The notes below the pieces were generated by a model. That model saw nothing but the letters and a program-made list of their open reading frames with translations. It was not told the origin of the DNA and did no database searches. A stretch of 64,000 nucleotides of DNA from the IMG/VR virus record IMGVR_UViG_3300042540_001822, positions 1-64,000 of that record, one strand, 5' to 3'. Both the position numbers and the translations under genes were made by a program. Positions within the stretch are counted from its first letter, which is position 1. Each line of letters begins with the position of its first letter. Positions 45,646-54,436 of the stretch are shown here, in pieces.

Positions 45646-45708
45646 ATGTTTAGTGTTTGTTTTTACAAATATACAAATAAATTTCTAAATTTTCAAATCT
45701 TATCTACA

Positions 45709-50000: not shown

Positions 50001-50098
50001 TAGTCAGGACAGGATTCGAACCTGCACACCTCAGTGTTTTATAGTTCATCAACTATGCGTTTCCCAAATGATATGTCTACCAATTTCGCCACCTGACT
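50001..50098 (-). ncRNA. AGTCAGG-family tRNA-like element 1
   Basis: AGTCAGG…GCAGGTTCGAATCCTGTCCTGACTA; Leu-type D loop; no canonical anticodon arm. Confidence 0.8.
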
Positions 50099-50201: not shown

Positions 50202-50333
50202 TAGTCAGGACAGGACTCGAACCTGTGCCTTGAGACTGACCCCTTGCTGACCTTTAGGTATCCACATCCTACCAGACTTGATGTGATATTTCTTTATCTG
50301 GGGAGCTGCTCTAACCAACTGAGCTACCTGACT
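50202..50333 (-). ncRNA. AGTCAGG-family tRNA-like element 2 (132 nt)
   Basis: Class-I D arm GCTCAGTTGGTTAGAGC; long insert. Confidence 0.8.
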
Positions 50334-50759: not shown

Positions 50760-50892
50760 CAGTCAGGACAGGATTCGAACCTGTGGTGCAAGTTATTAGG
50801 TGAAGTAATACTCTTCATTCATCAGACTGAGCTGAACCTCTCATTACCTTGCCGACTTGTAGTAGTTGCGTCTGCCATTCCGCCACATGACT
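50760..50892 (-). ncRNA. AGTCAGG-family tRNA-like element 3 (133 nt)
   Basis: G73; insert with GCAAG/CTTGC and GTAAT/ATTAC stems. Confidence 0.8.
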
Positions 50893-51022
50893 ATTTTATT
50901 TTTTTATGCTGTCAACATTCTTATTACAACACCTAACAATACTGAGTAAATCATTGCGGTAATTGCAAAACCAATCATTATACCATCAAAATATGTTTTT
51001 TCCTTTTTCATAACTTTAAATT

Positions 51023-51421: not shown

Positions 51422-51515
51422 TAGTCAGACAGGGTTCGAACCTGTATGTCAGCTTTACATTTCGTTGACTGACCGCACCTTGAAGCGAGCGTCTATCCAA
51501 TTCCGCCACTTGACT
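51422..51515 (-). pseudogene. AGTCAGG-family element 4: tRNA-Leu-like with an 8-nt anticodon loop
   Basis: CGC-TTCAAGGT-GCG; 1-nt deletion in the acceptor 3' strand; long variable arm. Confidence 0.7.
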
Positions 51516-52320: not shown

Positions 52321-52407
52321 TAGTCAGGACAGGATTCGAACCTGTGTTCAGGGACTCAAAGTAAGTAACCCTCTGAGTTTGAATGGCAATCTTTTCGCCA
52401 CCTGACT
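52321..52407 (-). ncRNA. AGTCAGG-family tRNA-like element 5
   Basis: Long ACTCAGAG/CTTTGAGT hairpin replaces the anticodon arm. Confidence 0.8.
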
Positions 52408-52471: not shown

Positions 52472-52593
52472 TAGTCAGGACAGGATTCGAACCTGTGACA
52501 TTGCAACCCTTATACTTCCCGCGTCCTAATGATTATGAACCGTGTTGTTTTCGGGATGTGATAAACCTCTTTCACATTACGCAATACCTGACT
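52472..52593 (-). ncRNA. AGTCAGG-family tRNA-like element 6
   Basis: No D arm; ATGTGA/TCACAT and TCCCG/CGGGA stems. Confidence 0.75.
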
Positions 52594-52596
52594 ATG

Positions 52597-52806
52597 TTTC
52601 CCCACCCTGAGATTTGGGGTGAGTAGTCATTCTGGTTTTTTCCTATTGATAAAACCTACAGGGCATCCCCTATTAAAACAGTCACACTACGAAGGAGGGG
52701 CTGTGAGTGGCACCTTTAGCCCTAAGAACCGGCATTCCGCTGTCCGATTTAAGCGAGTCCATTGTTTAAGTCTTGAACCAAAGACTCTGAGTATCTCTTA
52801 CTCATT
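52597..52806 (-). ncRNA. candidate structured ncRNA
   Basis: Non-coding; hairpins at 52603-52621, 52769-52786, 52788-52804. Confidence 0.45.
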
Positions 52807-52807
52807 G

Positions 52808-52928
52808 CAGTCAGGACAGGACTCGAACCCGTGGAGAACGGCTTGATAGTTTCTGCGCGAGGGCTACTTAATTCGCCACCCCTCAATCCTTGTTCTCAAT
52901 TACGCTGCGGAACCACCGCCACCTGACT
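52808..52928 (-). ncRNA. AGTCAGG-family tRNA-like element 7
   Basis: G73; GCGG/CCGC D hairpin; GAGAAC/GTTCTC and GAGGG/CCCTC stems. Confidence 0.8.
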
Positions 52929-53089
52929 ATATTTAAAGTAACCCAACTCAGAGGGGTATTTGTTACATTATCACAGCTTTTGCAAAGTACTCTGGTTAAT
53001 TACTCCGTCTGTACCCAACTGCTTTATGTTGGCTTATAGCTGGCTATTTTAATGCAACTCACAACTTTATTTGTTGGAATTACTTTTTG

Positions 53090-53170
53090 TAGTCAGGGCA
53101 GGACTCGAACCTGCGGGAACTGTTTTGCCACGTAGGACTTATGTAGGCTCCACCATTTTGCCACCTGACT
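53090..53170 (-). ncRNA. AGTCAGG-family tRNA-like element 8 (81 nt)
   Basis: Perfect acceptor and T arm; non-canonical middle. Confidence 0.75.
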
Positions 53171-53340
53171 GTGTGTACCGTTCCTATCTACTTTATGAAC
53201 ATACGGTACCAGATGCTTCATCATGACCTTCGGATAGGTAAGTTTTGAGGATGAGAAGACCTCTGTGTTGTAAGTTGCCTACCATAAATGGTATCCTTTA
53301 GCATCTACTCAAGCAATTCCTTTCTCAAGGGAACAACACT
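53171..53340 (-). ncRNA. candidate structured ncRNA
   Basis: Stems GTACCGT/ACGGTAC, GTGTTG/CAACAC, TACCAT/ATGGTA. Confidence 0.5.
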
Positions 53341-53342
53341 AG

Positions 53343-53463
53343 CAGTAAGGACAGGCTTCGAACCTGTAAGGTCTCCATGACAGAGCCTATGGTGTGATTA
53401 CGCTCACTCATCTTAGGGATGCGAACCCATTCCAATACCGTTTACCAATTTCGGCACCTAACT
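53343..53463 (-). ncRNA. AGTCAGG-family tRNA-like element 9
   Basis: AGTTAGG/CCTTACT acceptor, CCG/CGG D stem, G73. Confidence 0.75.
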
Positions 53464-53975
53464 AAAAAAGAAGGTTCTGGATCGTACCTGGACCAATCAG
53501 GAGAACCTTCAAATTGTATATAAAAGGTCATTTATAATCCTACCTATATTTCCAAGATCCTTTGGAATATAGTAACCATCCAAGGTAGGCCTATACTCTG
53601 GCACTCCGTCTGTACTTGTTGGCCTAATCAATGTGTCATAGGTTTTCAGATACAGCGTTCAGTGTTACCCTCAGGACTTCTTCATCCTGCCCCCAAAGTT
53701 ACGTGGGAACCTCACTTAGAAGTTTAAGTGTGTATCGTAGAATTGTCCAGTATTTCTACGACTTGTGGATTACAACACGACCAATTAAGGCCCCTTACCC
53801 TCTCAATCCATAATGAGGGACTCATTTATTCTCGTTCCCGACGTAACCTACTGAATACCTTCTGTGGTTATACGAATTTCACTTTTGTGTATCTTTCACC
53901 CATAGCCACGAAGACTTCCAGTCGTGGATCACACACCATAACGGATGAGTACTTCCGTTAATTGTGGGCTCTTTT
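53464..53975 (-). ncRNA. candidate large structured ncRNA (about 500 nt)
   Basis: At least 7 clear stems; no plausible minus-strand ORF in the track. Confidence 0.5.
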
Positions 53976-54072
53976 GTTGATTAATAAGGATTCGAACCTT
54001 AATCCTCCAGCCCTGTAGCGTTTCGTGTTCCCGAACCTACCGGGGCCAGTGTGCCCATTACACTATAATCAA
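53976..54072 (-). ncRNA. tRNA-like element with a 29-nt structured anticodon loop
   Basis: TTGATTA/TAATCAA acceptor, GTGT/ACAC D stem, GGCCC/GGGCT stem, TAAGG-TTCGAAT-CCTTA. Confidence 0.65.
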
Positions 54073-54122
54073 TCGAGAGTTTCGAACCTCTCAGGTACCA
54101 AGGTAATTAATCTTGGACTTTG

Positions 54123-54262
54123 CAATCGGTGTGAGAATCGAACTCACTCAAAAGGACGGTTCCTTTATCAGTTACACAAAGTAATTACTCCTTGCTTTAC
54201 CTGCCGTGTAACGTTTTGTGGCCACTCCGCGTTACCAAATGTCAACCAAAGACATACCAATT
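54123..54262 (-). ncRNA. tRNA-like element (140 nt)
   Basis: AATTGGT/ACCGATT acceptor, GTGAG-TTCGATT-CTCAC T arm; 5' boundary uncertain. Confidence 0.5.
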
Positions 54263-54340
54263 CCGCTGTCTTCCCAGCTGTGTGGGTTTAGTATTGACTT
54301 ACCCGTCAATGACGAGCTCTTGCCCCAAACCAAGGCTAGG

Positions 54341-54436
54341 TAGTCAGGACAGGAATCGAACCTGTGAGTATAGGATTAGCGCTTAGCCTATACACATCTT
54401 ATTTCTAGAGTGCGTCTACCACTCCGCCACCTGACC
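54341..54436 (-). ncRNA. AGTCAGG-family tRNA-like element 10
   Basis: Leu-type D arm, 7-bp GTATAGG/CCTATAC variable arm, collapsed anticodon stem. Confidence 0.8.

Follow-up and report, generated by a model that had tools for sequence, protein, structure and literature searches.

Two classes of giant phage RNAs tied to tRNA islands are known, GOLLD and ROOL. Both were recently shown to build RNA-only cages, and neither has a known function. GOLLD RNA (Rfam RF02032) is a large, ornate phage-borne RNA that is found beside or inside tRNA islands and was first seen in lake metagenomes. It has no known protein partner, and tRNAs can be physically linked to it (PMC12286853). ROOL RNA (Rfam RF03087) is a phage or prophage RNA of about 580 nt. 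It is often near tRNA islands, highly structured with pseudoknots, and abundant (PMC12286853). Non-tRNA RNAs that lie flush between tRNA-shaped elements may also be released by tRNA end processing, as in the mitochondrial punctuation model, MALAT1/mascRNA and the MHV68 tRNA-miRNA units. Additionally, a 62-nt motif known as freshwater-1 (Rfam RF02979) has been described from freshwater metagenomes.

Here we describe a structured non-coding RNA of about 510 nt that is carried by uncultured lake-water phages inside their tRNA and tRNA-like gene islands. It shares with GOLLD the genomic niche, the freshwater source and direct abutment to tRNA-like genes. However, the GOLLD covariance model (threshold 150 bits) gives no match at E<=10 anywhere in the 219-kb genome, with 30 candidates scored. 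The RNA is also shorter than GOLLD (about 410-545 nt versus often more than 800) and has different conserved motifs and helices. The ROOL model (threshold 99.1 bits) likewise gives no match at E<=10 in the genome, although that search also gave none in its control genomes. No ROOL row is seen in the Rfam scans of the window or of four relatives. ROOL occurs in prophages of cultured bacteria, whereas the present family was found only in uncultured viral contigs. A freshwater-1 copy scoring 61.9 bits, below the gathering score of 72, lies about 470 nt downstream of the family member in one viral locus (L137, copy at 996-1056), in the same tRNA island. It is unrelated in sequence and is not present in the candidate region.

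Genomic setting of the RNA

The window is the stretch of 64,000 nucleotides that begins the IMG/VR virus record IMGVR_UViG_3300042540_001822, a genome of 219,475 bases that is estimated to be 88% complete. Its genes are small, densely packed and mostly on the minus strand. The few recognisable ones are phage-like and include a lysozyme, a DnaB/KaiC-type ATPase and phrog_2087. Two adjacent, partly overlapping ORFs at 338-2276 on the plus strand both carry a VWA-like DUF2201 domain. Blastn and tblastn searches of 50,697 cultured-phage records with the island, a relative's RNA and a 508-aa protein found nothing. From about 49.6 to 54.5 kb the minus strand carries a tRNA-Met and a series of tRNA-like genes, and from 52.25 to 54.53 kb there is no credible ORF. 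The RNA fills the largest gap in that series, between the tRNA-like genes e11 and e10 (Table 1). The whole genome has only three canonical tRNAs (Met, Arg, Ser) despite its many tRNA-shaped RNAs. Outside the window, ARAGORN calls a tmRNA with an atypical tag peptide (G000:C1:175910-176347, where G000:C1 is the genome's contig handle). When ARAGORN was run with introns it mis-joined the repeated acceptor stems into false tRNAs with introns of 368-1386 nt, and these were rejected.

The first-pass annotation had proposed a candidate large ornate ncRNA of about 500 nt at 53464-53975, with six stems and no credible gene. It had noted that GOLLD and ROOL lie among tRNAs and could not match this RNA to them. 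Our analysis supports each of these points. The proposed interval is almost exactly the gap between e11 and e10, and all six stems coincide with covarying helices of the family consensus structure. No strand had been stated, and the RNA is on the minus strand. The tRNAs around it in the window are mostly aberrant tRNA-shaped RNAs rather than ordinary tRNAs.

Table 1. Features of the RNA and of its flanks, in window coordinates.
Coordinates	Strand	Feature	Support
53464-53976	-	ncRNA gene, about 513 nt, from the first base after the discriminator of e11 to the end of the U6 run	nhmmer family profile hits 53462-53978, E 1.5e-117, single copy in the 219-kb genome; RNA-library contigs cover 53499-53959
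53977-54072	-	Upstream flank e11, a tRNA-shaped RNA of a second frame type whose 3' end abuts the ncRNA	Read from the sequence
53940-53959	-	Hairpin 1, 5 bp, variable loop	4 of 5 pairs covary
53906-53927	-	Hairpin 2, 5 bp, conserved 10-nt loop	2 pairs covary; the window carries the compensated CGA/UCG version of UGA/UCA
53830-53884	-	Optional insert domain 1, enclosed by an invariant 8-bp helix (53896-53903 / 53813-53820)	Present in 11 of 30 aligned relatives, absent from the rest (alignment columns 104-185); enclosing helix 98% canonical but invariant, so untested by covariation
53777-53794	-	Hairpin 3, 5 bp, 6-nt loop starting with an invariant UUAA	3 pairs covary
53734-53762	-	Hairpin 4, 9 bp, 11-nt loop with a conserved ACUG.ACAA	5 pairs covary, 100% canonical
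53714-53730	-	Hairpin 5, 5 bp	2 pairs covary
53689-53711	-	Hairpin 6, invariant 8-nt loop; contains the invariant 15-mer used to find the family	7 bp, 98% canonical, 1 pair covaries
53601-53665	-	Optional domain 2, closed by a 4-bp helix	3 of 4 closing pairs covary; missing or replaced in several relatives (alignment columns 354-420)
53539-53589	-	Hairpin 7 (7 bp) enclosing hairpin 8 (6 bp, 53550-53567) and an invariant 12-nt strand	5 and 6 pairs covary, 100% canonical
53464-53511	-	3' element, a branched hairpin (53470-53511; outer stem 53470-53510, 9 bp) followed by U6 (53464-53469), intrinsic-terminator-like	8 of 9 outer pairs and 4 of 4 inner pairs covary; missed by a simple terminator scan because its loop exceeds 8 nt
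53343-53463	-	Downstream flank e10, a tRNA-shaped RNA (variant of the main frame) that starts one base after the U6 run	

Conservation, predicted fold and expression

The comparative evidence for this RNA is decisive. A search of viral loci first identified two relatives at about 76% identity. An invariant 15-mer taken from their alignment retrieved 42 viral contigs from IMG/VR, of which 38 are true homologues, and a second, independent pattern added 15 more. With a family profile there are 53 loci at E<1e-30 and nothing between that and chance level. The 42 unique full-length members are 411-545 nt long, share a median identity of 74% and have 130 invariant columns. The invariant 15-mer has 110 exact hits in 185,579 prokaryotic species genomes; all are chance, and none matches the family profile. 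Rfam 15 scans at gathering scores and at E<=10 of the window, of 49-56 kb, of 53440-54000 and of six related loci gave only tRNA and chance-level rows for the candidate. RNase P RNA, tmRNA, 6S and SRP RNA are not listed at E<=10 in a 561-nt search with lax filters. No description of this RNA turned up in Rfam or in the papers searched, although an anonymous entry in a 2023 catalogue of about 8,500 IMG/VR RNA candidates cannot be excluded (PMC10690425).

RNAalifold applied to 30 members predicts a consensus fold of 87 pairs, 43 of which show double compensatory changes. In a separate count 97.5% of the cells are canonical, whereas sliding the 3' partners by 1-3 columns gives 34-46% canonical cells and 11-18 apparent covariations. 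The two optional domains define a smaller core. The long-range helices join invariant G-runs and C-runs that cannot be tested by covariation, and they came out differently in two consensus folds, so we treat the predicted global architecture as unresolved. Two invariant elements, a hairpin loop containing GUAAC and a strand containing GUUAC, are complementary. Two further invariant motifs are self-complementary, namely UUAA in the loop of hairpin 3 and ACGU formed by the closing A and the first loop bases of hairpin 6. These are leads only. The same 13-mer (plus strand ACTCCGTCTGTAC) occurs at 53603-53615 in optional domain 2 and at 53002-53014 in the spacer between two tRNA-shaped RNAs, which may indicate a paralogous sub-module.

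Several lines of evidence point to the minus strand. Within predicted pairs there are 240 G.U cells and 13 A.C cells, and the consensus energy is -77.7 against -59.7 for the reverse complement. The 3' hairpin is followed by U6 only on this strand. A tRNA lies within 1.5 kb in 32 of 38 relatives, and every neighbouring tRNA is on the same strand as the RNA. The single sequence folds better than shuffles, with z = -2.5 on the RNA strand and -5.3 on the opposite strand, a statistic that alone would have pointed to the wrong strand. The RNA is non-coding. The ORFs of the window in this interval are 30-77 aa on mixed strands, and across the 42 relatives the longest ATG ORF ranges from 14 to 101 aa and falls on either strand. 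It travels with no fixed protein gene, as no protein cluster occurs in more than 9 of 38 loci.

In four relatives a TAnnTTTG box lies 8-13 nt upstream of the conserved 5' end. In six others it lies 74-76 nt upstream, before an extra covarying 75-nt 5' hairpin domain that is fused to the RNA, has its promoter about 8 nt upstream and is not present anywhere in the window. It is also seen at 99 nt with a tRNA-shaped RNA in between. In five relatives the 3' element is followed by non-tRNA DNA, a new promoter or a protein gene. In some phages it is thus inferred that the RNA is its own transcription unit, with a -33/-7 promoter and a hairpin-plus-U terminator. The box, with TTTG about 19 nt further up, resembles the promoter form of Bacteroidota. 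It recurs eight times on the minus strand of the window, and six of these, as near-identical copies (TTTG, about 20 nt, TAnnTTTG, then TAAAA; -7 boxes ending at 45666, 34179, 33282, 32207, 31819 and 26774), lie upstream of small genes in the A+T-rich 26-46 kb region. A Bacteroidota host is inferred from promoter shape alone. No such box was found upstream of the island in the window, where the RNA is flush against tRNA-like genes on both sides. Here it is likely released from a longer island transcript by host enzymes that trim tRNA ends, with a 3' cut after the discriminator of e11 and an RNase P cut at the first base of e10. This route is inferred, and in the family it would be optional.

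The RNA is present in RNA libraries. The 2.3-kb non-coding stretch is about 99% present in eight or more lake and freshwater DNA runs, whereas only 22-29% of it is present in six metatranscriptome runs from six studies. In four of these runs, from four studies, whole contigs of 460 nt (53499-53958), 458 nt (53502-53959) and 395 nt (53569-53963), and most of a 246-nt contig (53530-53759), sit on the RNA with 1-4 differences at a depth of 21-30. The region 54098-54328 has depth 0 in all four runs, and 53405-53481 has depth 0 in three runs and under 1 in the fourth. Uneven cover of this kind argues against DNA carry-over, although contigs give neither strand, exact ends nor abundance. Other pieces of the island (52519-52849, 52824-53103 and 53245-53368) are also present as RNA.

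Possible roles and the surrounding tRNA-shaped RNAs

With moderate confidence, we favor the view that this is a free-standing, trans-acting RNA that works as a folded particle rather than as a leader, intron or mRNA, in the same genomic niche as GOLLD and ROOL. The analogy rests on niche, size and ornateness only, and no function has been measured. Our best guess, which is speculative, is that it occupies the same functional niche as GOLLD and ROOL, as an abundant architectural RNA made during infection that binds, or assembles around, parts of the tRNA/translation machinery. It may self-associate through its self-complementary loop motifs, but this is a guess from two invariant palindromes.

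Other roles are considered less likely. The RNA could be a decoy or sponge for a host protein, such as a defence nuclease aimed at tRNA, an RNase or a ribosomal protein. Its position in an island of tRNA look-alikes and its contig being the deepest of the island in three of four RNA runs would fit this view, and OLE RNA is proposed to sequester a ribosomal protein (PMC12286853). No binding partner is known or encoded nearby, and the genome has no TROVE/Ro60 or RtcB gene, so a Y-RNA-like system is not supported. Apart from the partner, nothing here separates this unlikely reading from the favored one. It is similarly doubtful that the RNA is a ribozyme that cuts, joins, charges or otherwise matures the tRNA-shaped RNAs of its island. 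Its 130 invariant columns, many in loops and junctions, are more than a passive scaffold usually needs, no protein partner is conserved, and tRNA-shaped frame RNAs occur on the same strand, and none on the other, in 36 of 53 loci. However, it does not resemble RNase P, group I/II introns or any small self-cleaver in Rfam, 17 of 53 loci show no frame RNA in the DNA retrieved, and its conserved single strands are no more complementary to the constant parts of the frame than to shuffled versions.

A cis-acting leader or attenuator and a mobile intron are largely excluded by the data. The terminator-like element ends 1-6 nt before a tRNA or tRNA-like gene in many loci, including the window, and could control read-through into these genes. 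This is very unlikely because of the five relatives in which other DNA follows the element, because no alternative (antiterminator) pairing is conserved and the terminator covaries as a plain hairpin, and because about 450 nt with 130 invariant columns is far beyond known leaders. The RNA also persists as a discrete species in RNA libraries. The appearance of the module in different neighborhoods of diverse phages, on contigs of 5 to 304 kb, suggests mobility. A self-splicing intron, another mobile RNA element or its remnant is nevertheless the least likely reading, as no group I or group II model matches at E<=10, the flanks are complete tRNA-like genes or promoters rather than two halves of one gene, there is no ORF for a homing enzyme or reverse transcriptase, and no joint removing the RNA appears in RNA contigs.

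The surrounding island is itself striking. Ten window elements on the minus strand (50001-50098, 50202-50333, 50760-50893, 51422-51515, 52321-52407, 52472-52593, 52808-52928, 53090-53170, 53343-53463 and 54341-54436) share one frame, with the acceptor AGUCAGG/CCUGACU plus A, a Leu-like D arm and one T arm. Each has an unrelated insert of 20-130 nt where the anticodon and variable arms belong. The constant 3' part occurs in more than 120 IMG/VR contigs. It was not found as a copy of a host tRNA in 301 sampled genomes of the Flavobacterium phylum (Bacteroidota), nor in three named genomes. Of 184 unique elements only 38 are called tRNA by ARAGORN, with scattered and sometimes 2- or 4-base anticodons, and the inserts fall into 143 clusters. 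One copy has a GAAA-capped hairpin instead of an anticodon arm, and some inserts recur in other contigs with compensatory changes. A second frame (53977-54072 and 54073-54200, minus strand; acceptor UUGAUUA/UAAUCAA) is preceded by a lone T-arm-like hairpin, and the same pair with different inserts precedes the large RNA in two other loci. Other spacer pieces (52594-52807, 53171-53345 and 54071-54340) are conserved in different viral contigs in other orders, and parts are present in RNA libraries; for example, 52594-52807 recurs in eight loci, weakly in one of them. The island looks like a mix-and-match set of separate RNA modules. It is conceivable, though improbable, that the large RNA is the hub of a co-transcribed set of such RNAs and would organize, process or cage them or host tRNAs. 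Together they would form an RNA-only system that reprograms or shields the host's tRNA and translation machinery during infection. No description of the frame RNAs was found in the papers searched.

A third, unrelated class in the niche of GOLLD and ROOL would show that the niche, rather than one fold, is what recurs. The new class comes from different phages, from freshwater and probably infecting Bacteroidota. It is compact, has a crisp set of invariant loops and two optional domains that define a minimal core, and there is direct evidence of its expression in nature, which gives a tractable handle for asking what such RNAs do. Its neighbors, more than 180 different tRNA-shaped RNAs that share one frame but carry unrelated inserts, suggest that phages use the tRNA fold as a general chassis for expressing other RNAs, which would be of interest to both RNA biology and RNA engineering.
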